Below are positions 3,101 through 64,000 of a DNA stretch of 64,000 nucleotides, piece after piece. The position numbers and the translations under genes are program-made. Position 1 is the stretch's first letter; every line of letters begins with the position of its first letter. A model generated the notes under the pieces. That model was not told the origin of the DNA. It searched no databases and saw nothing but the letters and a program-made list of their open reading frames with translations. The stretch is from Nageia nagi (taxonomy: Eukaryota; Plantae; Pinophyta), in assembly GCA_050084985.1 (NCBI GenBank), contig JBITNC010000001.1, forward strand, positions 45,632,001-45,696,000. Direction: 5' to 3'.

Positions 3101-3479
3101 CTTCAGCTCACCCTTCCCAAGTAATTATTTATGTCAATTGATATTTACTTTAAATTATATATAAATTCTCATTTTTTACATATTTTTAATATTATATTTT
3201 CCTTTTTTAAAAAATTAATTTAATTAATTATTAATTCTTATTTTTGGCATATTTTTTATATTGTATTTTAATAATTTTTTTTACAAAATTAAGTTATTTT
3301 ATTTCATTAAATTAAATTAAAATAAATAAATATAAATATTAAATATTAAATGTGAAACTCAACTCAAGGTATAAGTTTAAAATTTAAGACATGAATATAT
3401 CAAAATATCAAATCACATTGTAAATGTAGCATAATTTCAAATCATAATGTATCATGAATCAACATCATGATCATGATCA

Positions 3480-4324
3480 CTATCAAGCTCATAATGATCA
3501 CTGTGTGCATCATTATGATCACCACCACCACTCCTCCTATCCTTAGTAGTCTATTCCTTGACCTCTACTGGCACTAGTGATGAACCCCACTATAATTAAA
3601 AATTAAATATATATTAATAAATAAATAGAAAATAAAAATCTTAATTACATGATAAAATGAATTAAAATAACATAAAATATCACTAATTACTTACCACCTC
3701 CACCAATGTGATTAGCCTATTGAAACCTTCTTTAATTCTATAAGCCAATTCATCTAATGTTAGAAGTATTCAAAATCTATTGAACCACCAAAAATATATA
3801 TATTTAATTAAATAATATTACTATTATTTAACTTTTTTAAAAAATATTAAATAATTTACAAATATACTCACAACCATAGCCTCAATTTTGCATTTTCTTG
3901 TGTTAGCAGTTCCATACATACCACCAATAGAAATTGATCTACTAAAATTATGCATGGATACAAATTTTTCCTGCACTAAGTGTTCATTTGTGGACCTGCA
4001 ACACCCTTCATCATCATTCACTTTTTTTGACCATTTGTTTCCACACTTTCTTATTTCATGTTGGTGGTTTGATGCTCATATGATTGTCTAGTTGAAGCTT
4101 TTTTATGAATCTTCTAAAGTTATCCCTTTTGCAATTCAAGTTGGGAGTTGTCATTTGGAGTATTTTTTTGCACTCCACCCATCACCCCAATCTTTTATGA
4201 GCACATCTATCATTTGTCTATTGGCTACAAAATACATAGTTATAAAAAAATATTTTTTATTTTTTTATATTTAATTTTTTTTAAATATCATAAAAAATAT
4301 GTTTTGAAATTATTATTATTAATA

Positions 4325-4355
<31 letters not shown>

Positions 4356-5000
4356 TGATCTAATTTTTTCATTTAAAATCCAATGTTGGATCAAAATATA
4401 GGAATGTCGCATCCTTGAGCCAATCATAAATAATTTTCTTTGAAAAATATTTGCAAATTAATATATTGTAAATCTATATATAAATATACATTTTTTCAAG
4501 CATCAACTCTTACCAGCTTCATCACGCATGACTTCATCATCTACTTTGACCCTTATTTCAATCCCCTTTGCTCCCTTTGAAGTTGAAAATGTAGAGGTCT
4601 CTTGATTAACTAACTCTACACTTAATCACCTTTAACACATCAAAAATAAATAATTTAAAAATATTACTTCATTCGTAAATAAATGAAAATTAACAAATCA
4701 TTAAAAAAGTATTACCATGTGGAGTGCTTGGAGGTTGTGGTCTAGTGCTTATGGTATGAATTCTAGAAGAAGTCTCAATACCCAAATCTTCCTCCTATTC
4801 TTTGGTAGTAATATTATTTTCACAATTTTAAACATTTAGTTTGCTAACTCTCCTTGAAAAAAATAAGTTAGTTTCCTTATAAAATCAAAGCATTAATTAA
4901 AATATATTGATATTACATTATAGCATTTTCTTGTCATCTTCAAGATCATGATCTAACCACTCCTTTCCAAGTCTTTTTTTTTTTTACCATGATGATCACT
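3480..5000 (-). pseudogene. Possible CACTA TnpA/Ptta-like (Transposase_24) multi-exon remnant
   Basis: Minus-strand KPPT*NKKVWKQMVKKVNDDEGCCRSTNEHLVQEKFVSMHNFSRS (about 3930-4085) resembles the Ptta pattern P....VW..LV..W.....RS..N...R....H..GS. Short coding-like blocks are separated by very AT-rich GT-AG-bounded gaps. Confidence 0.4.
4328..4354. repeat. (TA)n microsatellite, about 13 units
   Basis: tatatatatatatatatatatatatat read directly. Confidence 0.95.
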
Positions 5001-5269
5001 AAATAAAGGTAATAAAAATTTTAATATTGTTAGTATAATAAAGGAAAAACATAATATCAAAAAATTTAAATTTAAAACCTAATATCATAATTTAAAAAAA
5101 AAAAGCTTAATGTTCTAATAAAATAAAAAAATAAATTTCATGTCATAAATCAGATAAAAATTAAGCCTAATGTCATAAATATAAAAAATAATTAAGCCTA
5201 ATATCATTAATTTTATTTAAAAAAAAATTAAAGCCTAATGTCCTAAACGTAAATATTTTTTATAAAGTC

Positions 5270-5550
5270 CTAACCTTGAATGTTTTCACAAAGTCCTAAT
5301 CTTGATTTGTTTTATAAAGATGTAACCCTAAAATGTTTTACAATATCTTAATCATATATATTTCTTGCAAATTATTAACCCTAAGTTTCTTTTACAATAT
5401 CATAACCCTATATCCTAAACCCCTAAAACTCTAAACCTTAAAACACTTTACCCTAAATCTTGCCCTTAACCCTTTACTCCTAATCCTTAAACCCTAACCA
5501 TAACCCCAAACCCTTGAACCCTAACCTCCAATCTAAATCCTTAACCCCTA
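5270..5550 (+). repeat. Degenerate plant telomere-like (CCCTAAA/AACCCT) tract
   Basis: Repeated aaccctaa, taaaccct, aaccttaa and aacccttg units. Confidence 0.7.
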
Positions 5551-7565
5551 ATTTAATCAAAAAAATGGAGGAAACACTAACCAATGATAGGAATTGAAGC
5601 AACAAATATGAGATCCTTAGGATAGATGATCCAAAAGGAGAAAAATTTTGAGCTCAATTCAAGTAGAAAATACAGAGACATATGGAGAATATGAGACTTG
5701 ATCATCATAACTACCAGTCATATAAAACCAATAATAGAGGTAAGAAATTATTTTTCCCTCATAATTAGGTTTAGAGGGAGCTCCAATAGTGTATAAGCAT
5801 GATGAACAAACCATAAAGGATGTAATAATAGGATTACTAGAGAAAAAATGAGATAAGCCAACCTTGGGAATCAATCAAATGGATAAAATACAAAGACAAG
5901 AATGCCCATAAGGAGAAGTTAGGAAGTTAAATAAATAGAAGATGCAAAAATAAGGTGAAAAAATGAGAGAAATAGGGATTGTTGAGTCCTTAAACTACTT
6001 CTACAAAATTGTTATCAATGATAATACATACATGGAATGTAAGGGGATTAAAAAACCATCCTAGATTAATATTGTTGTATAAGGAAATTAAGGATTCCTT
6101 ATAGGGAATGCAAAATATATCAAAGAGATGTTGGTAGCAAGGAGACTTTATGCATCAAGCTTATCAAGATCTCTCAAGAGGTTTAATATCATTATGGAAT
6201 AAGAATAGATTTAAGATATTAGACTTAACTTAGCAAGAGAGATTGTTATGACTAGACTTGAAGAAAGGGAATCTAGAATAGTTTAGATGATAGTAAAATT
6301 TTATGGTATAATAGAGGTAAGGGTTCAAGAGGTACAGTGGAAAGTAATCCAAAAACTTAAAGAGTCATATCCAAGAGAGTTATGGATAGTGGGAGGGGAT
6401 TTAACTATTAAAATATTAGTCTAAGATTTAGGAAGGAGGATTGGTTTAGTTAAATTAGAAGGACAATTTATTATTATCTCAAGTAGAATTTTAAACTTAT
6501 TTGATATAACCCACCATGGTGTAGCAACACTTAAATAAATAAAAGGAAAGGTGATGACACTATCAAATCTAAGTTGGACATATTTTTGGGTTTGGGGAAA
6601 AAAAGACTATTTTATGACAATACCAATCCTATATTCTAAACTAGTTGGCATCTTATCATTTTCTTATACAACTTCATATAAGATAAATGCCTCAAGAAAA
6701 AAATTGACCCTTTAGGTTTGAGCATTTTTAATTTTTAAATCAAGACTTGTGAAGACTTATAGAGCATTAGTGGTAATGGGTAAACCCTCACATAGAGAAA
6801 CATAATTCCAATATCATTCTAGATTGAAATTCATCAAGAGTAAATTAAAAATTTGGAGCAAATCTCTTAAGTCAAATTTTCCAATAGCAAAGAATAAGTC
6901 TCTCCATACAAATGAAAGAAACAAAAAAAATAATTCAATATGAGCCTCTTTCTTAAGAATTGGTCTAAGAAAATTATTTGCTACAAGAGGAGGAGGAACT
7001 TGATAAAAAAAGAAGAGGCTTGTTAGAGATAAATATCAATAACTACCTAGTTATTGAAGGGAGATAAGAATACAAGATTTTTCCATCAATCAATAACAAC
7101 CTAAAATCACCATAATAGGATTGATGCTCTATTTACAAAGGAAGATAATACAGTTACCACTACTTAGGTATGCAAAAAATAGCTAATAATTATTTTATAT
7201 CACTATTTTCATCAATGACTAATATATCTAGCCAACATTAGGAGGAAATTATTGAAAGCATCCCAAAGATACTTTATCATAAATAAAATAAGAAACTCCA
7301 AGAAATAAGGAGTAGGAAGTCAAATTAATAGTGTTCTCTATGCAAATAGGAAAGGCACCTAGTCCAAATGGTTTTCCAATAGTGTTTTTTAGGACATTCT
7401 AGGACATAAAAAGCATAATATCTAAGCCAAGAAATAGAGGAAGCAAAGCTAGTGGTAAAATTTTGAAGGCCTTCAACCATACTTTTCTTACTCTAATTCT
7501 TAAAGAGACATGAAATATCTCTCCAACTATGCATAAATTATATTATATTGTAATGTAGTCTATAA

Positions 7566-8069
7566 TGTTGGAGAATTGGCCCTTATAACAAGTTCATTTT
7601 TTGAGCTTCCATATTTTAGGTCCTAATTATTAGCTTGTGAACTGACTAGTTGTAACTAGAAGCTATCCGATGACCTCCAAATCTACCAACCAACCTACTA
7701 GCTAGGCTTAGATAAAAAGTGCTTCATAAATCCAAATATTGAATATATTTTTATGTGTTTTATCTAGTTGCTCATCTCACCTTGATTTACTTGACAAGTG
7801 TCGTTAGTTATTACTTTCATTTACTATGGATAAATTTATAAACTTTGTATTAATAGTTAAATCTCATTCTCAAGTTGAATGTATTGATGATTTTTATTCT
7901 ACAAATCTCTCCATTGAATAATGTATGAAGCTTCATTCTTAAACTTCATTTGATATAATTTTTTTTCTAGTAATATATTATTGTTCCTATTCAATTCCTC
8001 TTTTATTTTATAATATTGCTCCATTATTTACAGTATTGTTGTCTATTTTGAATATTCTTGAACTTATCA
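7566..8069 (+). repeat. Copia A 5' LTR (504 bp)
   Basis: TGTTGG...TTATCA; homologous to 19944-20476. Confidence 0.85.
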
Positions 8070-8923
8070 TTTGTTATCAGAGCTTTGTTGGGTCTGAGTT
8101 GGGTTTGAGAAAGCCTATGCCTTATTGTAAATACAAATGTTTCTTATAGATTATACAATTTCTTATTTTTAGGTATCATGGCTAGCAATACAAATTCATC
8201 CATTCCAATTCCAAAATTTGATGGAAGTGACTATGAATACTAGAGAATTAAGATATAGACTTTGCTCATAAGAAAATATTAATGGGGTGTAGTTGATAAT
8301 GGCTACTTAGAACCTATTCATTAGAGTAAACTTTTAGAATATGAGAAGAATACTAGGAAGAAATGTAGGAGAAATAAATCTCTTACCTTGTCTCACCTCC
8401 AAGAAGCTCTTGATAGGAGCATTTTTCCCAAGATTGTTGGTTGCAAGATAGCCAAAGATGCTTGGATAGTGTTGAAGGAAGGATTCTAAGGGAATGATCA
8501 AGTACTAGAGGTGAAGTTACATACTCTAAAAATAGAATTTGAGACACTCAAGATGAAAGAGACTGAGAAGGCAATTGATTATTATATTAGAGTGAAGGAG
8601 ATTATCAATAAAATGGAAATTCTTGGTGAAGATATGAAAAAGCTAGTTATAATTAAAATATTTTGAGATCACTCACTAAGAAGTGGAACCATATTACTAT
8701 GATTTTGGAGAATACCAAGGATGTATCTAAAATGGAGATTAATTATATCATTGAATCTCTTATGTTTTATGAGGAGAGACTAGATGATGAACCATTCTAT
8801 TCTAGTAATGTACGAGAGAAATCCTTTACTGTAAAAGAAGATGAATCAAGCTCAAATGGACAAGGAAGAGGAAGAGGAAGAAGCTATAAAAGAGGTAGAG
8901 AAAGAGGAAGTGGAGGTTCTTCA

Positions 8924-11900
8924 TGTTGGAGTGTGGAGCCTGTTATCCTAGGAGCTACATGTATAAACCATGTATAGGTGGAGTGCCCCTATGATCCCTT
9001 ATTAGAAAAGTGTTATTCTTGTAAAAACCTACTTTTAGGAGAAGCAATTTTTAATGGTGAATTAGGAACATTGATATTTAGGTCATAGATTGTATTCTCT
9101 ATTATATAAAAAGGATTTTTATGAAGGAAATATCATGGTCTTAGAGTTATGATAGGGTTTGAGCATATGGGAGCTTGATAGAGAGCTTGTGAGAGATTGA
9201 GGAGATTGTGCATCAGGGTTGATATGAATTATAAATTTGTAATCCCTCTATTTTGGACTATGATAAAGATTGATTAGTTATTTCTTTAGGGACATAGCCC
9301 ACATTGGATGAACCTCATTACATATTATGTTAATCTCTTATGTGATTGTTCTTGGTTATTTATTTTACTTGTGCAAGTTTTATTGTGCATATATATTTTA
9401 CTTGAATATATATATACCCAACAACTGGTATCAGAGCTTTGTGTTAGGCACTCACAAAAGGGTGTTCTGTTGGAGTGGGAGTAATGGAAGAAAAAGGGAT
9501 ATTTCAAGTAGAAAAGTTTAACAGATAGAATTTTCAATTTTAGAAAATGCAAATGGATATTCCCTTTATTAAAGGGACCTCTACCTACCTCTAGAAGGTA
9601 AGGTAAAGATACCAAGTACAATGCCTAATGAATAATGGGCTTTGTTAGATAGGAAAGAATTGGGGATGGTGAAGGTTATGTTAACTAGCATGGTAGCCTT
9701 CAATATTTCAAAAATGAAAACCATAAAGGATGTGATGCATGCATTAGCTAAGTTGTACGAGAAACCTTCATCTTTGAACAAGTTTTTTCTAATATAGAAA
9801 TTATTTAATATGAATATGAATGAAGGTGCTTCAATTTAGGGTCATTTAAATACATTTAATATTGTGAATAGTTAATTAGGTTTAGTAGGAATAGATTCTA
9901 ATGATTAAGTCAGGGCTTACTAATTTTGTAATCACTTTTAGAGAGTTGGAATAGTTTGGTAATGGCTTTAAGTAATTCTACATCTAGTTCTAACAAGTTA
10001 GTATTTGATGATGTTGTTAGCATTATTCATAATGAAGGTATGAGGAGAAAAACCTTGGGAGAGCCCTCATTATCAAGAACAATGTTAATGGTTGAGAGCA
10101 ATAAAGGAAGGTAGAGAGAGGAAAAAGTTAGAGCAGAGGAATATTAAAAGGAAGATATAAGTCAAAAAGTAAAGGAAAACTTCAATATTGGTATTGTGGC
10201 AAGAAAGGCCATTTGAAGAAGGATTTCTAGAATAGAATCAATGATGAAAAAGGTGAGGATGGAAGAAATAAAGGTAATAAATTAGAATCAAATTTAATTG
10301 GTGAAATATTGTAGGATGTTTTGATGTTATCTTTATATAAGAATAATGATTACTTGGTTATTGATTCTGATGCATCTTTTCATGCTACTTCATAGAAGGA
10401 TTATTTTGTAGAGTGTGTTTAAGGTGATTTAGGATAATTTCTATTAGGAGACAAGATTTCCTACCAGGTTGAGGAAATGGGAAAGATAAATATGAGGTTA
10501 TCTAATGGAACTCTATTGGTATTGAATGAAGTATGATATATTCCTAATCTGAAGAGAAATTTGATCTCAACCAGTAAACTTGATAAAGAATGCTTCACAA
10601 TTGTATTTGGAGAAAACCCTTGGAAGTTAGCAAAAGGCTCCATGGTGTTTGCTAAAGGTAAATAAGCTGGTTTGCTTTATTTTCTTATAGAATCATCTAT
10701 TTGCACTATGAATTTTGTTGCTATAGGAGAATATGCACTACAAATTAGGCCAAATGAATGAAAAAGGAATGAAAGTTTTGCACTCATAGAAATTACTATC
10801 AAAAATCAAGGAAGTTTATTTGGGGTTTTGTGAGGATTACATTTATGGTAAATAAAAAGGGTAAGATTTCTACAAGTTGAAAAAGAGAAGAAGATAGAAA
10901 AGTTACAATTAGTTTACATTGATGTATGGGGACTAGCTCAGGTAACTTCTCTTAGTGGTTCCAATTATTATGTATTTTATAGATGATACCAAAAGAAAAA
11001 CCTAGATTTACAGTATTAGTAAAAATTCTGATGTCTTTGATACATTTCAAGGTGGAAGGCATTGGTGGCTAATTGTGTTGACACTGTTATTTATTTGATC
11101 AATAGGGGGCCTTGTACTGCTTTAGATGATGGTATTCTAGAAGAGACATGGAAAGGTAAATTTGTGAACTATTCCTTCCTTAAAGTCTTTGGGTGTGAAG
11201 GTTACACTCTCATAGATAAGGAAAATAGAAAAAATCTAGATGCTAAGTTAGGAAATATTATTTCATTAGATATGGGGTAGATGGCTTATTTTTCAGATTA
11301 TGGGAGAATACTAAAAAGTAATTCATTAGGAGTAGAGATATTTTTAATAAGAAAAGAGTGTAAAAGGATGTATTGTAGGGAAATGATGATAGTAAGTACA
11401 TTGTACTTGATAAAGAGAATATACCAAAGGTGCAAAATGAGAACCTTCAACTAAAAGAACTAGTAACACTAGTAAATATTGTAAGAAGATCTCAAAGTGT
11501 TAGTAACTCTTCTGATAGATATTCTCCTACTTTGTATTATGTTTTGTGTACTAATGCTAGTGAGCCAAAGAGTTTTTATGAGGTTATGTAAGCAAGTAAC
11601 AAGAAGCAATGGGAGCTAGGGATGGATGAGGAGATGGATTTCTTATGCCAAAACCAAACATATGGTTTGGTTAAGCTTCCTACTAGAAAGAAACCATTGC
11701 ATAATTAATTGGTATATATGGTTAAAGGAGAAGTGGGAGGCAACAAGACGTACAAAGAAAGGCTTGTAATGAAAGGTTATGCATAAAAGAAAGGTATAAA
11801 CTATTATGATATTTTTTCCTAGTAATCAAGATGAATTATATTCATACTATTTTAAGTTTGGTTGTAACCTAGGATTTGCATTTAAAGAAGCTTGATGTAA

Positions 11901-50993: not shown

Positions 50994-51628
50994 TGTTAGA
51001 AAAATGGAGACTAAGACAGAACCAGCCAGATAGAACAGGCCAGCCGGCCAACCGGCTAAGATGCTAGTAAATCTGAAGGATAGTTTTGTTTATAAAGCCA
51101 ACCGGTCTGCAGGGCAGTTTCTTTCTCATTTCAAACCAATTTTCAGTTGCCAAGGAGCCATGACACCTGTTCAGCAGTTGTAGAAGGGTTGGGGGTTACC
51201 TAACGACCTTCCTGATCCAACTTGGGTTTAAGTTGGGTTAGTTTGTACCTATAAATAAGAGGCTTGAGTTGAGGCATGTATGTAGTTGGAATATGTGTGT
51301 ATGACTGTAATTTGACAGCATTTGTGAGGTTGATTGTAATTGTTGAGAGAGAGATTGTAGTGAGGCTTTGTTGTAACTCCAAAGTGAAGGTTGTAGCAAG
51401 GTTATGCTACTGGTGTATTGCTTGGAGGACTTGAATGCAAAAGAGTTGAAAGCTTCTCCATGGATGTAGCCTACACTGGGTGAACCACGTTATCTCTTGT
51501 GTCTCTCTTATGTGATTGATGTTTATGGATGTTTATTTTCAGTAGTATGCTTAATGTTGTTTCTTCTTTGCCAAAGACAATCTAAATTGTGAATACTCTT
51601 GGTTATATGAACTCTTTAAATCCTAACA
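50994..51628 (+). repeat. Copia I 5' LTR (635 bp)
   Basis: TGTTAG...CTAACA; TATA box tataaata at ~51250. Confidence 0.98.
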
Positions 51629-51630
51629 AT

Positions 51631-51643
51631 TGGTATCAGAGCC
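51631..51643 (+). promoter_or_regulatory. Primer binding site (tRNA-iMet)
   Basis: TGGTATCAGAGCC, 2 nt after the LTR. Confidence 0.97.
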
Positions 51644-51708
51644 ACGTTGTTGTGTTGGGATTTTCTTGGTGAATCTTGTGTGTAGATTGGAAATCAAGGA
51701 AGAGCACT

Positions 51709-54700
51709 ATGGCAGAAGAAGGGAGGCTGAAGGTGGAAAGGTTTAATGGGCAAGGATTTCAGTTTTGGAAAATGCAAATGGAAGACTACCTCTACCAAAA
51801 GGATCTCTATCTACCTCTAGAAGAGAAGAGTAAGAAACTTACTTCTATGAATGATGAAGAGTGGAATCTCTTGGATAGAAAGGCTTTGGGTGCTATAAGA
51901 CTTTGTTTAAGTTCTAGTGTAGCTTTCAATATTTCCAATGAAAAGACCACTAAAGGTGTAATGGATAAGCTTGCTAAATTGTATGAAAAACCATCTACCT
52001 CTAACAAAGTATACTTAATAAAAAAATTGTTTAACATGAAGATGAATGAAGGTAGTTCAGTTCAGGACCATGTTAATGAGTTCAATACAATCACAAATCA
52101 ATTGACTTCAGTAAGTTTAGAATTTGAAGATGAAGTAAGGGCCTTGTTAATTCTATGTTCACTTCCGGATAGTTGGAATAGCTTTGTTATGGCTATTAGC
52201 AATTCTTCTTCTAATGCAAAATTGGTCTTTGATGAAGTTGTTGGAACAATTCTTAGTGAGGACATGAGGAGAAAGTCCACAGGAGAATGCTCCAATGCTG
52301 CTCTCACAGTAGAGGCAAGAGGAAGACCAAAGGAAAGAAGGAGAAGCAAGTCAAGAAGCAAATCACAAGGAAGGTCGAAATCACAAGGTAAAACAAAATT
52401 GGAATGTTGGTATTGTGGTAAAAAGGGTCACATTAAAAAGGATTGTTGGAATAGAAAAGGTAAAGAATGTGATAGTAGTAATAATGAAAGCACAAGTAAT
52501 CAAGAGGTTAATATGGTTGGTGAATTAATCCAAGATGCTTTAATCATGTCTAACGAAAAGAACAATGATTATTGGGTTCTTGATTCGGGTGCTTCATATC
52601 ATGCTACTCCACATAAGGACTTCTTTTCTAATTACACACATGGTGATTTTGGTCAAGTGTTATTAGGTAATGAACATCCATGTAAAATTGTTGGTATGGG
52701 CAATATAACAATGAAATTACCTAATGGAACATAATGGACTCTTAATGAAGCAAGACACATTCTGGATCTTAAAAGGAATCTCATATCAATAAGTAAATTG
52801 GATAAGGAGGGCTATGTGATGACATTCGGGGATGGTAATTGGAAAGTTTCTAAAGGTTCAATGGTATTTGCAAAGGGAAATTTGGTGGGGTCTCTTTATT
52901 TACTCACAAATGTCTTTGATTATTCATTGAATCTTGTTTCCTTTGGTAATGATACATCACTATGGCATAATAGACTTGGACATATGAGTGAAAAAGGAAT
53001 GAAAATGTTACACACTAATGGTTCACTTCCAAATCTAAAAGAAATTGATTTAGGATTTTGTGAAGATTGTGTGTATGGTAAACAAAAGAAAGTTAGATTT
53101 CTTAAAGTTGGCAATGAAAGGAAGAGTCACAAATTAGAGCTTGTTCATACAGATGTGTGGGGTCCTGCACAGGTTTGGTCACTTGGGGGCTCATCTTATT
53201 TTGTCACTTTTATTGATGATTGTACCAGGAAGACATGGGTATACTGTATTAAAAAGAAATCTGATGTGTTTGAAACTTTTAAGAGGTGGAAGGCATTGGT
53301 TGAGAATGAAACTAATTCTAAGTTAAAATGTATTAAGTCAGATAATGGTGGAGAATTTTGCAATAATGAGTTTGATTCATTTTGTTCACACAATGGCATT
53401 AGAAGGATTAAGGTGGTTCCTAGAACTCCACAGGAAAATGGGGTTGCAGAGAGAATGAATAGGACTATCTTGGAAAGGGCTAGAAGTATGAGGATACATG
53501 TTGGGTTTCCTTTAAATCTTTGGGCTGATGCTATTGACACTACTATTTACTTGATTAACAGGGGTCCATCTATGGCTTTAGATGGAGGCATTCCAGAGGA
53601 GATGTGGACAGGTAAAAAGGTGAATTACTTATTCTTGAGAGTCTTTGGTTGTGAGGCTTTTGCACATGTTGATAAGGAGAATAGAAATAAACTTGATGCA
53701 AAATCACAAAAATGTTATCTTATTGGATATGGTGTTAATGATTTTGGATATAGGTTATGGGATGTAGATAACCATAAAATCATTAGAAGTAGAGATGTTG
53801 TATTCAATGAGAATAACATGTATAAAGATAGGTTGCAAAAGGTTGAGGAACCCAAGAATGTATCTCTAGAAGATGTTGATCAATATAAGGGTCCTGATAA
53901 TGTTGAAGCACCTCCACCACAAACACCTCAAACTTTTTCGCTTAGAAGATCCACAAGGATTAGAAATCCTCCTGAACGATATTCTCCTACTCTTTATCAT
54001 ATTTTGTATACTGATGGTGGCGAACCTGAATGTTTTGATGAAGCTATGCAGGGTGGTACACAGATTAAGTGGGAGCATGCTATGAAGGAGGAGATGGACT
54101 CCTTACTTAAGAATCAGACTTGGAGTTTGGTTGAGCTTCCAGAGGGTAAGAGGGCTCTTACTAACAAATGGGTGTATAGGATAAAGGAGGATGCAGATGG
54201 GCGACAAAGGTACAAGGCAAGACTTGTGGTAAAAGGTTTCGAACAGAAAAAAGGTATTGATTATGATGAGATCTTTTCTCTAGTTGTTAAAATGACCTCG
54301 ATTAGAGCAATATTGAGTCTTGTTGCTACTGAAAATTTGTTTCTTGAACAACTGGATGTAAAGACAGCTTTCCTTCATGGGGATTTGGAGGAAGATATTT
54401 ATATGCATCAACCCGAAGGTTTTGAGGTCAAAGGTAAAGAAGGGTATGTATGTAAATTGGAAAAGAGTTTGTATGGCTTAAAACAAGCACCCAGGCAATG
54501 GTATCATAAGTTTGACACTTTCATGGTAACAAATGAATTTGTAAGATGTCAATCTGATCATTGTGTGTATATAAAAAGAACAACAAATGGCAACTATGTA
54601 ATCTTGCTTTTATATGTGGATGACATGTTGATAGCAGGACCTAGTATGCAGGATATTGTTGATCTTAAGGAAAAGTTGGCTAAAACTTTTGAAATGAAAG

Positions 54701-55575
54701 ATTTGGGTGAAGCTAATCAAATTCTTGGAATGAAAATAACAAGAGATAAACAAAACCACTCACGAAGATAAGTCAAGAAGACTATATTGAAAAGGTTCTT
54801 AAACGGTTCAATATGAATAATGCAAAAATCTGTAACTTTACCATTGGCAAAACATTTTAAACTCACCAAACATTTATGTCCTAAGACAGATAAGGAAAAG
54901 GAGTACATGACTAAGGTTCCTTATGCTTCAGCGGTTAGGAGTTTAATGTATGCAATGGTATGTACTAGACCAGATATAGCACAAGTAGTGGGAGTGGTTA
55001 GTAGATTTATGAATAATCTAGGAAAAGGGCATTGGGAAGCAGTTAAATGGATCCTTAGGTATTTAAGGGGTACTTCTCATTACTCTTTATGTTTTGGTGG
55101 ATCTAACTCTTGTTTGCAAGGATATGTTGATTCTGACATGGTAGGTGATATAGATGGTGGGAGAAGCACTACAGGTTATGTGTTTACCATTGGAGGTACA
55201 GCGGTTAGTTGGATTTCAAAACTCCAACAGGTTGTGGCTCTCTCCACTACTGAGGCAGAGTACGTGGTGATGATAGAGGTGAGTAAAGAATTGATTTGGT
55301 TGAAGAGACTGATGGAGGAATTGGAAAAGGTGCAGGAGGATGCAAAGTTATGGAGCGATAGCCAGAGTGCTATCCATCTTGCAAAGAACTTAGCCTACCA
55401 TTCGAGAATTAAACACATCAAATTGAGGTACCACTTCATTAGGGCAGCGTTGGAGGATGGTTCAGTCAGTTTGGGGAAGATTCACATGTCACAAAATCTT
55501 ACAGACATGTTCACGAAAGTTGTTACAAAGGAGAAGTTGGGCTCTTGCTCAACTTGGATTGGTCTTAAGGAGTAA
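51709..55575 (+). pseudogene. gag-pol polyprotein (gag, zinc knuckle, protease, integrase, RT, RNase H) with one premature stop and a -1/+1 frameshift pair
   Basis: ATG at 51709; CWYCGKKGHIKKDC; WVLDSGASYH; integrase HTDVWG/SDNGGEF/ENGVAE; RT LLYVDDML; RNase H VDSD…TEAEY. TAA at 52732-52734 and indels at ~54763 and ~54825. Confidence 0.97.
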
Positions 55576-55635
55576 AGGCCAAGATGAGGAGCTTTTGACC
55601 CTTGTTGCAGAGGAAGAAGTCTCCAAGTGGGAGAT

Positions 55636-56260
55636 TGTTAGAAAAATGGAGACTAAGACAGAACCAGCCAGACAGAACAGGCCAGCCGACCAACCGGCTA
55701 AGATGCTAGTAAATCTGAAGGATAGTTTTGTTTATAAAGCCAACCGATCTGCAGGGCAGTTTCTTTCTCACTTCAAACCAATTTTCAGTTGCCAAGGAGC
55801 CATGACACCTGTTCAGCAGTTGTAGAAGGGTTGGGGGTTACCTAACGACCTTCCTGATCCAACTTGGGTTTAAGTTGGGTTAGTTTGTACCTATAAATAA
55901 GAGGCTTGAGTTGAGGCATGTATGTAGTTGGAATATGTGTGTATGACTGTAATTTGACAGCATTTGTGAGGTTGATTGTAATTATTGAGAGAGAGATTGT
56001 AGTGAGGCTTTGTTGTAACTCCAAAGTGAAGGTTGTAGCAAGGTTATGCTACTGGTGTATTGCTTGGAGGACTTGAATGCAAAAGAGTTGAAAGCTTCTC
56101 CGTGGATGTAGCCTACACTGGGTGAACCACGTTATCTCTTGTGTCTCTCTTGTGTGATTGATGTTTATTTTCAGTAGTATGCTTAATGTTGTTTCTTCTT
56201 TGCCAAAGACAATCTAAATTGTGAATACTCTTGGTTATATGAACTCTTTAAATCCTAACA
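55636..56260 (+). repeat. Copia I 3' LTR (625 bp)
   Basis: TGTTAG...CTAACA; about 99% identical to the 5' LTR. Confidence 0.98.
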
Positions 56261-57147
56261 CATGCTAGGTAACTATGAGATACACTAGAATACCTATAAG
56301 TGACTTGTATAGGATTGCATTAACTAGAGGAGTAGAATCCTCCTTCATCAGTTTATAACCAACAACCTTGAGGGTACCAAATGGTTTACAATCTTTCATT
56401 GAGAATCTAACAAGAATATCATTAACATTTTTTGTTTCATTGATGAATATGATGTTATATGATTGTTGAACATGCATGTCTAAAAAGTATTGCATCTCAC
56501 CCAAATTACTCTCAAACTCATTAACAATGGCAATCTTAAATTGTTGGAGCATGGGCGAAGATAAGTCCATAAATATAATATCATCAACACAGAGATAAAT
56601 GATAATATAATTAGAGTCAATTACCTTTATGCATAATGTATATTTTGCAGAGCACCTCTAACATCCATTTTGATTGAAGTAGGTATCAATATAGGGTTAC
56701 CAAATGCAAAGGGCTTGCTTCAGCTCATAAAGGCCTTTCTTAAGCATGTATTCTTTGTCCTCATGGTTGATGATAGTTAATCCTTATGTTTGATTCATGT
56801 ATAATTCTTCTTCCAAGTATCCATTAAATAAGGTATACTTCACATCCATTTGATATAATTTAGACCAAAATGAAAAGTTAAAGCAAGAAGAGAATAGACT
56901 ATATCAATGTGGGAAATAGGGGTAAACATCTCTTTGTATTCTAGGCTTTCTTTCTCGATATATCCCTTAGCAACGAACTAGGTTTTGTATGTTGCAATGC
57001 AACCATTAGCATTGTGCTTAACTTGTAGATCCATTTGAATCCACTAACATTATTATTCTTTGGAGGAGGGATAAGATATCATACATCATTCTTTTGGATC
57101 TACTCTATCTCATCTTGGATTATTACTTTCGAATATTTATTGGATAC

Positions 57148-58336: not shown

Positions 58337-58659
58337 CCTATTACAACCTACAAATTTGGTGTTCTCTACACCTTTCTCCTTTAATTTGCAAGTTTTACTC
58401 ATTTTGGGGGTTTTCTTGATTCTCACTCACCTAAGTGGAAAAACAAGTAATGTCCATACTATTTAAGTTCAATTTTAAGTGAAATTTTAATACAAAAATC
58501 TGAGAGAGGGGTGAATTGGATATAATATTTTAGAGCTCAAATTTGTAATTTTTTCCCAAGCATAGCCTCTATTGCATCTCGTGCTAGGTGTATTTCACAT
58601 AAACATAGCAATAGGAAAGTTACAAGCTTGTTCAAGGGCCCAAAATGCACTTCAAACTA

Positions 58660-58955
58660 GTTGTACTATGCCTAGCCCCTAGGTACATTGCACCAAGACC
58701 CCAAGCACAACCCCCATTACACCTAGCTCCTAGGTGCACTATGCCCCAAAATAGGCCCATATTTTACCTAGAGACACTCAAACCAAGTGCAATCCCCATT
58801 ACACCTAGCCCTTAGGCTTACTACACCCTAGAATAAAGGTTATTTTCACTCAAATTTAACTCATATGAGGTATAATCCTAACTACACCTAAGAACAAATA
58901 GCACCTTTTTTAAAATTTGATTAGATGAGGCATAATTTCAATTATGCTAGGACCA
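58660..58955. repeat. Degenerate short repeats (ccccattacacctagc…tagg) in the leader of element J
   Basis: Related units at ~58662, 58707, 58789, 58871 and 58931. Confidence 0.5.
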
Positions 58956-59039: not shown

Positions 59040-62000
59040 ACATTGTAGGAGATGTGTTTACACCCATGATAAGGTGTGCATCCATTGTTTGTTTTCATAT
59101 GGATTCAATTCCAAAGTAATCACTAGGTCTATCATGCAAGATTGTTATTCTATCAAGTGTGTCAAATCATTTACATTTAAATATCTCACACTAAAATGAC
59201 CTATAATCTAATTGTATAATTTCTTGAATTTTTTCAACATATTTTAAGTTTCCCTATATCAAGTTTGTATCTCTAAAACTTGCATGACTTTCTTGATCAA
59301 AATAAGCCATCACTCCATAGTCAAATGTTATTCTTCTCTCATCATTCTTTTTTTAAAGTGTTGACCATATGCCTACATTACAAGGAAAGATAGTTCTTAA
59401 ACATATTTACATGAAAAATGTTATTAGTGCTTGAACATATTCACACAAAAATTTAAGTTTTATAAAATATTAATAAAAATGGTGCATCCTATAGCAATAT
59501 TTAATGTATTTTCATAATCTTCATCTATTTTTCCTCCTGTACGTGTTATTTCATTTCAATTTCATTCTTAATCCATGACCTTGGACATTCTTATGGCTAA
59601 TTTTTCTCTCTTAGATTTTCAGGTAGACTAGATGTACCCCTTTGAATGTGTCTACGAAATAAGGCACATTCCTATTCAATTTCCCTTCTTTTATTTAGTA
59701 CAACTCAATCCACTTTTTGCAACATGCATAATTCATCATGATAAATCAATTTATAGATTCATGAAGGTGACAATATGTAAATTCACAATACCATAATACA
59801 AACTTGTTAGCTAGTAATTAAGCATATATACAATTTGTAAATCCAAAGTGCATGTACATATCTAAAACATAGTAAATACCTTTAATAGAATATAGTGTTC
59901 CACCTATTTTTAAGACCTCTCCTTTTAATTTTTCACTATCTTTGTTTGCATTCCATATCTTTGGGGTAGAAGGATCTATTTGGTATAGATACTCACTTGC
60001 ATAAAAACATTATTCCTATACAATGTTAGCACTTTTAAAAATTCTCCATAAAAAATATGTTTCTAGCAGCCATAACACTTGCCATGTCAATATCATCTAC
60101 TAAGTGGATCAAAGGTGTACTTACATATCCATAAAAGCATGTGGCAATTCTTTTCTAATTTGCAAACAATTTCAACAATCTCTCTACACCATTGATCTAT
60201 TGCAACCACATGTATCTCCTTTGAAGATAACCACATGTTCATGAAAATATAATATCATCAAAATATTGCACATCAAAATGCAAAAAATATTAGAAAATAA
60301 GATCAAAATCATGTTATATTATTTTATAAAGCCATACTATAACATGACATACCTTATAAATAATGAAAATTAACTAATTGCATGTCTAAGATCAATAGCT
60401 AGACTCCCACATCCATGAATTTCAATTGGAAAAATATGTTGTAGAAAGTATGAGTATAAATATAACAAGTATTTTTATTTCAATGGAAAATATGAAAAAC
60501 ATATTATGATATCAGTACCTTCATGAAGTTGTAGTAATCATGAGTCTTGAATCCTATTATTTTACCATTAGCACTGAATGCACTTCTTAGAGATGATCCA
60601 TAATTTATTGGTGTTATGATGTTTTGAATAAGTTCATGTAACTTTTCCACTTTATCTTTTTTCATAAAGTATTTTGTTATTTCATGAAAATATGAAAAAC
60701 ATATTAGATTATCTACTTCTATGAAGTTTTAGTATCAAATGAGTCTGAATCCTATTATTTTACTATTAGCACTGAATGCACTTCTTAGAGATGATCCATA
60801 ATTTGTTGGTGTTATGATGTTTTGAATAAGTTCATGTAACTTTTCCACTTTATCTTTTTTCATAATACATGTTGTTATAGGTACTTATTTTCTTTCATCT
60901 TGATAGTTAGTTATCCATAAAGATCTCATTTTCTTAATATCTTTTAAATCTTTTCTCATAATATTAGAATCTACTTCTTTGCTTGTCATATACTGATACA
61001 AAAAAGTTACAACATTATTTACAATGTGCATAGGATCCATTAAATATGTCACTAGCAAACTCCTTCCAATATTTTAGTGTGTAAAATATTGATAATTTGT
61101 TCATTCTTGAAAACATGCAACCAATTCATAATAAACATTGTATATTTTTTAAATAATAAATATATTACAAATATATTGTATTGTATAATATTTCAACTGC
61201 TAGTAAATCATTCTTTTCAAGAATAATCTCATCATCTAACCCTAAAGTAGTACCCTCATCATAGGATCTTTTTCTAACATTTTCCACACATTCATGGTAC
61301 TTTATCAACCAACTCATAGAAGTTTCATAAATAGGAATAGGGGTTTTATCTATTAGACCATAGGCTTTTTTTTTCAAAAGTATGATCCATTGGCAAATAT
61401 TTCCTATTGCCAATATATTACATCTTATTCATCTTACTTGATAGCTTGATGGAAATTTTGTTAACCTTTTGTATGAAGACCTATGATAATTTTATTTATA
61501 GAACGCATATAATTCATATGATTATAAAAAATTAAAAATACAGATGTATATATATATGCATACCTACCCAAATAGAAAGCCCTAGATAATAATGTATATT
61601 CTAACATATTATTCCATAACATTTGAATGACCTCTAATTGATAGGTCTACTTATATCACACATTTGAACTTCTTTCCATAAGAGTTACAACTTGTTAATT
61701 ATTGGTTTAAGGTAGACATCCATATGTGTAACCTATTTTGGTCTAGGGACTATAATATCCAACATAAAATGCTCTTTTCTTATAGATATACATGGAGGTA
61801 TGTTATAACTTATTATAATAATCAACCAACATGAATGAGTGGATGTTTGGTTCAAAAATGGATTGACACCATCCATTACTATACCTAATCTAACACTCCT
61901 GGGTTCATCCTTAAATTTCTCGAGCCACTTCTCCTTTATATGTTACATTGATTTATTATCTGTAGGTATACACAACATACCTTCTTCAATTATATTTTTT

Positions 62001-62851
62001 CATGCTAATCCATTAACTTTGCAAGTGACTTATAGCAAAATATTGATATCAACTTGGGAAGGATTGGTATTACATGAACAACCTTATTGGAGTTTTTTTT
62101 CCTATTTCATTGTATCTTTTTTTTTACACTTTGCACATTTATTCTTTGTATCATATTCTTCTTCTATATACAATATGAAATCATTAATACATGCATGGTA
62201 TGAATTATACTCAACCCTTACATTCTTCATAATTTCACATTCTTCTTTGCATGAATCTGGATTACATTATCACTTGGAAATAACTTTTTTTTTAGTAACC
62301 TATAATACCAATTAAAAATAAGTTATGTAGTTAATTTTATTAAAAATAAAATATTAGAAATTGAAATATCATAAAATAAAATAAAATTCAAACCTTATAA
62401 GAGAAGTGAAACTTGTATCTGACCATCCATATTTAGCTTTTATGTTCATTACAAGTAGGATCATCGATAATACAGTTATGATTGTTCCTTCATATAATTT
62501 GGTTTTGGAATACTATACATGTTATCCCTTTCTAAATCATCATCTCTTTTGTCACCATCTCTTTCTTCATCATCAACATGAACATAGAGGGACTCAAGTA
62601 AACCATCAATTCCATTTTCTTTATCATCATTATTATCAACATCATCACCATGACCAAAATTATTCTCTATTAGTTCATCATCAGTACTTAAATCCCACAT
62701 AGGTATTTGAATAGGAGTTTTTGGATTTGGTTTAGACATAAAATTTGCATATTGCTCAAGGATCCATGCTTTTCATAAAATCTTTTTATCACTCCTATTA
62801 CATTATTTTGATGCAATGTTGGTGTAACAATTATCATTCTTGACTAGTCAT
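59040..62851 (-). pseudogene. CACTA/EnSpm transposase (TnpD-like: Transposase_21, DUF4218, DUF4216), intron-containing, decayed
   Basis: LYEGTIITVLSMILLVMNIKAKYGWSDTSFTSL; YHACINDFILY…KCAKC; KFKDEPRSVRLGIVMDGVNPF…CWLIIIISYNIPP; MDVYLKP; MDPMHIVNNV; IVEIVCKLEK…IHLVDDI; IQEIIQLDYRSF*CEIFKCK*FD. GT-AG introns at 62300-62393 and 61481-61563. Confidence 0.92.
60467..60864. repeat. ~200-bp tandem duplication within the CACTA transposase
   Basis: 60467-60666 repeated at 60667-60864. Confidence 0.9.
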
Positions 62852-63081
62852 AATGACTATTTATTTCATATAAAATTAGTTGTTACAAACCATTAATTTA
62901 GAATATAAAAAAAATTAGTGAAACAAGTGTAAAGTTAATTTGATACATCCATTGATACATAAGTTCCAAACATATAATTTGAATATACATGCATACATAT
63001 AACAAATTGATACATCCAAACATAGAGTACGTTATTTATACATACAAATTGAAACATCCATTCATACACATCAATAATATA

Positions 63082-63908
63082 TTAATTTTTGTTTTTATTT
63101 TTGGGTTTTGGTTTAGGATGAATTATTACATTTTTATCATCTCCTAACTCCAAAGTTCATGCCTTACATGTTGAAGTAGGTCTCCTATAACTATAGTGAT
63201 CTAGTAGCTCATCACCAACATTAAGAATTTTAATGGAAACAACAACTATATAATTATTTCATTTGTCTACCCATGAAATCTTCTTTATCATTAGTACATT
63301 GGTGAAATTCACAATTTGGTGCCCATTCTTCACCTACATAATTATTTATGTATCCAACTATGTTTCCTTATATTTTTGGTCAACCATAAATGTATAAGTG
63401 TTTTGACTTCTATGGAGGTGGAATGTTGGAATCATTTTCATATAATCCATATGTGGACATATTGTACATATATCATGCTAATTCTCTCCAAACTACTACT
63501 ATGTAAACTAGCCCATAAAATGGTATCAATGGATCTATCTCAGAATGTGGAGTAACAACCACAGTACTATGTATAAACAAACCATATCCAAAACACATTT
63601 TAGATCATTTGATCATATATCAATGACCATAATAAAAAATATCTCATAAGCCTTTGGAAAAGGTATTTTAGTTGGCCATGCACCGTATTCCCCATGATTA
63701 TATGTATATTGATATTTAAATTGTAGATTTGGTGGTATGCATATCAAAACCAAATTATAAACATCCTCCTTTGGTAGATCAAATGGCTAGTCATGTGCAT
63801 CCTATACTAATTGATCATGAAGCTACTTCTAAAATATTATTCTTAAGGCATCTCTCTAACTTCATCTATCAATGGACCTACACATTATTTTGGCTTCATC
63901 TTCTAGAT
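63082..63908 (-). pseudogene. SET-domain protein (lysine methyltransferase-like), decayed, adjacent to the CACTA transposase
   Basis: Manual minus-strand translation: YMIK*SKMCFGYGLF (GxG, 63575-63589)…LIPFYGLVY…LYIYG*PKI*GNIVGYINNYVGEEWAPNCEF (63305-63367)…YIVVVSIKILNVGDELLDHYSY (63193-63216), then a basic tail HPKPKPKNKNKN*. Two frameshifts; stops are consistent with C>T/G>A decay. Confidence 0.85.
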
Positions 63909-64000
63909 CTACATTTAATTTTATTTAGTTTTATTTGATATCATTCAATATATAAGAATACAAAAATAAAATCAAATATTTTATTAATTAATTATCTCAT

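Follow-up and report, generated by a model that had tools for sequence, protein, structure and literature searches.

The window, the whole stretch of 64,000 nucleotides of Nageia nagi DNA analyzed here, has a base composition of 69% A+T. In the 5 kb at its right-hand edge it contains two decayed genes that are read in the same direction, a SET-like accessory gene followed by a CACTA transposase gene. Their features are as follows, in the direction of reading.

63900–64000, minus strand: part of the element that precedes the SET-like gene; homology to the family extends past the window edge
63899–63082, minus strand: whole SET-like accessory pseudogene, about 272 codons, interrupted by 11 in-frame stops and changing frame three times
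63899–63897, minus strand: start codon ATG (MKPK...); the copy L001/L002 and protein P0002 have a matching start and an open frame
63616–63786, minus strand: N-terminal extension containing KYQYTY...AWP...PFPKAYEIF; no known domain
63476–63604, minus strand: N-terminal part of the putative SET domain, with GYGLF (GxG-like) and PFYGLVY (xYxGxxx-like)
63413–63472, minus strand: middle part of the putative SET domain (YMYNMSTYGLY...), placed by frame translation and permissive alignment
63257–63367, minus strand: putative SET core with GNIVGYINN, a VGEEWA insertion and PNCEF, placed by the hhalign core alignment; the orthologous piece L003:10520–10780 corresponds to positions 61–104 of Pfam PF00856
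63160–63258, minus strand: C-terminal part of the putative SET domain, with the beta strand IVVVSIKILNVGDELLDHY and the ELxxDY equivalent, its Tyr kept
63085–63156, minus strand: basic Lys/Pro/Asn-rich tail HPKPKPKNKNKN (PKPKPKNKNKN), retained in other copies
63084–63082, minus strand: stop codon of the SET-like frame
62838–63081, minus strand: intergenic spacer separating the SET-like gene from that of the transposase, with 22–23-bp tandem units in L003 (10816–10890)
62837–59096, minus strand: decayed TNP2/TnpD-type CACTA transposase gene, with its ATG at 62837

An earlier reading of the locus, made from the sequence only, had reported four SET signature motifs in the correct order on the minus strand, and all four stretches were located in that order. 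The two frameshifts that it counted are correct for the part it had delimited, but the whole frame contains three changes, situated near 63860, 63640 and 63258. With these and the 11 in-frame stops, the copy is dead, as had been stated. No Cys cluster of the pre-SET or post-SET type was found flanking the SET-like part, and the N-terminal extension, described earlier as unrecognized, has no Pfam match. The basic tail that had been noted is present as well and is possibly nuclear-targeting.

The transposase gene matches Transposase_21 at window positions 61736–61942 (E = 1.1e-17). The orthologous pieces of L007 and L001, two copies of the family from metagenome contigs, match Transposase_21, DUF4218 and DUF4216 with E values of 3.8e-15, 1.2e-14 and 3e-4, and because of these matches the gene is assigned to the TNP2/TnpD type of CACTA transposase. 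The sequence-only reading had placed the end of the SET-like frame about 230 bp upstream of a CACTA transposase on the same strand; the measured distance is 245 bp. The array of the spacer was not detected by Tandem Repeats Finder in the decayed window copy. Homology to the family ends at 59096, so that the 3' part of the element is missing from the window.

The transposase pseudogene also carries a 198-bp tandem duplication (60548–60680 and 60746–60878). It is specific to the window copy, being absent from both copies that span the region at full length (L007 and L001). Just past 59096, at 58640–58860, there is an unrelated short repeat (units like CCTAGGTGTAATGGGG; direct repeat D4), which is probably another inserted element truncating the CACTA copy. 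Elsewhere in the window, a young Ty1/copia LTR retrotransposon occupies 50994–56267 on the plus strand. Identity between its LTR pieces is 99% and 96%, and it has an open gag (51676–52734) and an open integrase-reverse transcriptase frame (52798–54771), both confirmed by Pfam. Its insertion site adjoins minus-strand remains of older copia elements (56000–57100).

Copies of the SET-like frame

When the N-terminal piece of this frame was compared with 1.84 billion representative proteins, eight matches were obtained. The five convincing ones are short fragments (62–95 amino acids) of the same repeat family from metagenome assemblies, and the other three are long proteins matched in short or repeated stretches; neither an intact copy nor a longer protein of the family was present among the proteins searched with this query. 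In the fragment P0004 the N-terminal and SET-like parts are joined in one continuous reading frame. In a protein homologue search P0004 matched itself only, and a search with the alignment A3 returned family fragments only. When JGI metagenome contigs were scanned with an alignment of the fragments, nine loci were obtained. L001 and L002 are one locus sampled twice, and the same applies to L003 and L004, which leaves seven independent copies besides that in the window. No RNA run containing the stretch was found.

The eight copies were aligned by codons over a length of 261 codons, with L003, whose frame is free of frameshifts and contains four stops, as the guide. All eight contain the SET-like frame, which is continuous over about 270 codons without a visible internal intron. 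The number of stops per copy is 3–11 in the true frame versus 18–35 in the other two frames, and codon columns with a stop in most copies number 1 in the true frame versus 21 and 27 off-frame. Because the stop counts are so much lower in the true frame, at least 261 codons must have been open in the ancestor. All the copies observed are dead, and no intact SET-like copy was found. The stops lie mostly opposite CAA, GAA, CAG or TGG codons of other copies. Short contigs of the Logan collection differ from the window mostly by having G/C where the window has A/T. Both observations point to decay by C-to-T and G-to-A change.

Codon 136 (window 63482–63484) is TAA in five of the eight copies, the exceptions being the window (GAA), L007 (AAA) and L009 (CAA). 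The pattern is ambiguous between an ancestral premature stop and repeated hits on CAA, a C-to-T hot spot. At codon 174 there is a clear pattern of repeated hits on a CAA codon. Given the TAA shared at codon 136, the SET-like frame may have been broken already when the sampled copies arose.

The family is old and has a high copy number. Between 700 and 7,100 short Logan contigs per run match window positions 62700–64000 at 80–99% identity, in four runs that carry four different organism labels. The copies are about 20% apart, each about 10% from the ancestor, which at the usual neutral rates of plants corresponds to a rough age of several million years.

Pairwise dN/dS among the copies lies between 0.9 and 2.8 (median 1.3) and gives no sign of purifying selection, but this is the value expected for dead copies that decay independently, and off-frame controls revealed a bias of the Nei-Gojobori estimate in AT-rich DNA, so that the ratio says little about the active ancestor. 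A more distant relative, P0018, which is 42% identical, keeps GNIVGY.NSS, PNYEF, EDFM and GDELL..Y.Y. The retention of these motif residues is a hint that they were conserved for longer than the age of the copies compared here.

The main alternative to a former gene of the element is a functionless passenger, in which the ancestor captured a host SET gene or a retrocopy and the frame was then copied along passively, in the manner of Pack-CACTA elements. We consider this unlikely, although several observations fit it, namely the dN/dS of about 1 among the copies, the failure to find an intact copy, the missing catalytic His described below and the possibly ancestral stop at codon 136. It accounts poorly for a complete frame with start and stop codons on the same strand as the transposase, for the presence of that frame in all eight copies, one of them a deletion derivative that has lost the transposase, and for an ancestral frame open over at least 261 codons. 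Nor would a passenger be expected to keep the SET motif residues in a relative as distant as P0018. No host-like parent was detectable, the full HMMER protein search having used the N-terminal part. The completeness of the frame, its orientation along the transposase, its retention in every copy and the residues kept in P0018 all argue for a past function.

Relationship to SET domains

The homology of the frame to SET domains is real but remote, and a very divergent SET domain occupies the last ~150 residues. Sequence-to-profile methods have little power here. Pfam gave no match when the window pieces were taken separately. For the longest uninterrupted piece (L003:10520–10780, 87 amino acids), PF00856 was the sole Pfam match, with an E value of 0.055 over positions 61–104 of 105. 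A match to this SET model had been put forward as a check by the sequence-only reading; at 14.3 bits against a cut-off of 22.4 on the best uninterrupted piece, it falls below the threshold. Pfam and NCBIfam searches of the separate pieces returned nothing or sub-threshold matches only, and phmmer and hmmsearch found no match among the Protein Data Bank sequences even at an E value of 10. An AlphaFold2 model of the 87-residue C-terminal half, the only foldable piece, had a pLDDT of 46 and was useless. A feature search of the ESM Atlas with the 87-residue L003 piece was more informative, with a score of 0.92 and 171 of 256 features shared. SET clusters make up 21 of the 30 matches, some of which may be fragments of the same family. 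The atlas search with a 43-residue piece gave no usable match.

For profile-profile comparison, reference SET domains were fetched by means of a degenerate DNA pattern for FxNH(S/T)CxPNC, and eight were checked with Pfam. Viral contigs yielded nine pattern loci, and the eight frames tested all match Pfam SET (E values from 7e-6 to 2e-20). Prokaryote genomes yielded 120 pattern loci; the final profile contained 116 bacterial, archaeal and viral SET domains. In the family profile the frame was read through, with X at every stop and frameshift. Using hhalign, the C-terminal half aligned with six viral SET domains (Pfam E values from 1e-8 to 1e-20) at P = 7e-4. The whole family aligned with the viral SET domains with a score of 35.1 and P = 1.2e-4, a score reached by none of 100 column shuffles. 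Against the 116 SET domains the probability was 93%, with an E value of 3.5e-7 and a score of 47.7; among 100 column shuffles the highest score was 22.4, and the reversed sequence scored 13.0. Inclusion of the divergent relative P0018 left the probability at 92%. The earlier claim that the frame is SET-related is thus borne out by a profile-profile probability of 92–93% and by shuffles that never reach the score.

The confidently aligned columns are those of the SET core, ID..GN..(F/Y)IN.S., followed by PNCE, a strand and I..G(D/E)EL..(D/H)Y. With permissive settings collinearity extends through the entire domain and takes in G.G and (E/P)(Y/F).G. GYGLF and PFYGLVY then stand opposite G.GvfA and EY.Ge, outside the confidently aligned core. 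G-Y-G-L-F itself is intact in two of the eight copies (the window and L003), the others having RYG, GYS, RYS or GYD. At the other end of the domain, the ELxxDY motif is represented by GDELL(A/V/D)HY in all seven copies that reach it and by GDELLVSY in P0018.

The middle motif, GNIVGYINN...PNCEF, had been read as the equivalent of RFINHSCxPN. This holds for the PN region, which is kept, but not for the His, which is missing from all copies. In the eight copies and in P0018 the NHSC His is replaced (INSC, INSS or INNY), while PNC or PNY is kept and the N aligns. Compared with the reference domains, hhalign places an insertion of four residues (VGEE) before PN and one of twelve more after PNCEF.

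Might the frame be a genuine transposon gene unrelated to SET, with a motif order that arose by convergence or by chance in an AT-rich frame? The Pfam match below threshold, the empty HMMER searches of the Protein Data Bank, the poor model of the C-terminal half and the absence of the NH dyad would all agree with this. We nevertheless regard it as very unlikely. The comparison gave 93% probability and an E value of 3.5e-7, with a score that none of the 100 shuffles reached, and the aligned columns are exactly those of the SET core (ID..GN..INHSC..PNC...I.aG.EL..DY), with collinearity across the entire domain in the permissive alignment. The atlas feature search, moreover, indicates SET independently.

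The frame as part of the element

By blastn, window positions 64000–59096 are collinear with L007 (352–5131) at about 80% identity. L001, L005, L008 and L009 are also collinear with the window as far as their contigs reach, and L006 is a rearranged copy. The SET-like frame is followed by the transposase in six of the eight independent copies, which are the window and five of the seven from metagenomes. L003 is an internal-deletion derivative that has lost the transposase and kept the SET-like frame (9998–10780). Here, a 5' array (8148–9114) is followed by the frame and by a direct junction to the 3' region of the family, which contains an inverted array (11352–11834). Likewise, the arrays at the 3' side of L007 repeat, in inverted orientation, those at the 5' side of L009 and L005. 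Inverted subterminal repeat arrays, a trait of CACTA/EnSpm elements, are therefore present at both sides of the element. The six linked copies, together with the position of the L003 frame between inverted arrays, uphold the proposal that the frame is transposon cargo and not a host gene, and no element boundary of the kind that could have spoken against it is present between the frame and the transposase.

That a decayed host SET gene came to adjoin a CACTA insertion by chance, for which adjacency alone speaks, has a negligible probability and is refuted by recurrence, since the junction, the spacer and the flanks are found again with about 80% identity at no fewer than five further loci that are independent of the window, and matching short contigs number in the thousands.

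In L003, homology to the family runs on for about 2 kb past the point that corresponds to the window edge, through the 5' subterminal repeat array. A candidate 5' end, CACTTACTTGGTG, is found in L003 (7934) and in a mutated form in L008; the contigs stop short of the 3' end. The window copy is without either end, as its 5' part leaves the window and its similarity to the other copies ends at 59096. Terminal CACTA repeats and a 3-bp target-site duplication were not seen in the window or in the metagenome contigs. In the most complete copies, L007 and L001, there is no TnpA-like frame. Because no second gene of the TnpA type was found, the SET-like gene is the only accessory gene seen in the family.

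Several further features were observed in individual copies. The subterminal arrays (in L003, at 57–1290 of L009 and at 5570–6040 of L007) consist of telomere-like TTAGGG/TTAGTGG units with higher-order periods of 13–33 bp. About 300–400 bp upstream of the frame there are tandem repeats of 19 residues (..RSDVSSNSKELPTPITRR..), situated at 9412–9723 in L003 and found also in L001, L005, L008 and L009. This stretch is open over 68–104 codons in the five copies, ends in ..EDEV(R/S) and has no Pfam match. Judged by eye, its end could contain a GTAAG-like splice donor; the stretch may thus belong to the SET-like gene as an upstream exon, or it may be a small gene in its own right. In L001 the SET-like frame is interrupted in its C-terminal part by a 5.3-kb nested insertion (3211–8542). 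This insertion has 560-bp direct repeats that are 85% identical and is probably an old LTR element.

Proposed role and related systems

We judge it probable that the window contains a 3'-truncated, dead copy of an old, high-copy, autonomous CACTA/EnSpm family whose ancestor carried a SET-fold, chromatin-directed accessory protein. In the active ancestor, this protein would have been expressed with a novel N-terminal part, a SET fold and a basic tail. Its targets would have been lysines in chromatin proteins on or near the element, which it may have modified or simply bound, and the chromatin state of the element would thereby have been biased toward expression or transposition, by the logic that applies to other epigenetic modifiers carried by transposons. 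Because the NHSC His and the Cys clusters are absent, the protein may have been an enzyme of atypical kind or a decoy-like module without catalysis. The best reading of the gene is as that of an accessory protein once directed at chromatin, which was a methyltransferase of unusual type or a binder with a SET fold and no catalytic activity. A role in altering the silencing of the element itself is purely speculative. Going one step further, a plant CACTA lineage might have had its TnpA-type gene replaced or complemented by a SET-fold chromatin protein, which was selected in active elements and which, as an enzyme or a decoy, manipulated histone lysine methylation to escape silencing. This stronger version is doubtful; if it were true, it would constitute a chromatin-level counter-defence in a plant DNA transposon.

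Transposon-encoded epigenetic modifiers are rare and show how mobile elements fight host silencing. VANC of VANDAL elements and TnpA of En/Spm are transposon-encoded anti-silencing factors of plants and act as sequence-specific DNA-binding proteins. To our knowledge, the known cases in flowering plants are DNA-binding anti-silencers of this kind (VANC, TnpA). Like VANC and TnpA, the protein described here would be a second product of its element with the potential to affect the chromatin of that element, but it is SET-like, whereas VANC and TnpA bind DNA and have no SET domain. If a CACTA family did encode a SET-fold protein, the list of anti-silencers would gain a candidate directed at histones, and the SET-like proteins would form a defined family open to reconstruction and assay. 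As a fossil, it records that a successful high-copy family carried such a gene, whose past role can only be inferred.

Pack-CACTA elements are non-autonomous CACTA elements that carry gene fragments. The present family resembles them in having non-transposase coding cargo within a CACTA element. It differs from them in that its frame is complete, occurs in transposase-bearing copies and is common to the whole family. A Pack-CACTA with a captured host fragment was rejected on these grounds, the frame being complete in a transposase-bearing element and no host parent being found among plant proteins searched with the N-terminal part.

A SET gene carried by a DNA transposon is rare, with precedents in other transposon groups. 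The novelty implied by the sequence-only reading is reduced accordingly, as SET genes have been published in other transposon lineages. Full-text literature searches for a flowering-plant CACTA element with a SET gene found none described. HarbingerS elements are DNA transposons with a SET gene (Kojima and Jurka 2014, Repbase Reports, as cited in PMC12730594). As they are described there, they share with the present family the arrangement of a cut-and-paste DNA transposon with a SET-domain accessory gene beside the transposase; going by the same description, they differ in belonging to PIF/Harbinger and to other hosts, and the SET-like protein of the present family lacks the His of the NH dyad and has a novel N-terminal part. 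SET genes are also described in MuDR families of Phytophthora and in Helitron captures, according to the accounts in PMC12730594 and 10.1101/2025.02.11.637652. On those accounts they are likewise independent acquisitions of SET by transposons, in other superfamilies and other kingdoms.

A precedent from the same superfamily is Plavaka, a member of EnSpm/CACTA in red algae, in which the accessory gene PAG2 has a SET domain (bioRxiv 10.1101/2025.02.11.637652). Both are EnSpm/CACTA-superfamily elements with a SET-domain accessory gene, and most copies are degenerate in both. In Plavaka, however, PAG2 is an N6-adenine DNA methylase fused to SET and belongs to a three-gene cassette in giant elements of 17–19 kb (10.1101/2025.02.11.637652), whereas the present family has a single, small, stand-alone SET-like gene in a canonical plant CACTA of the TNP2 type.
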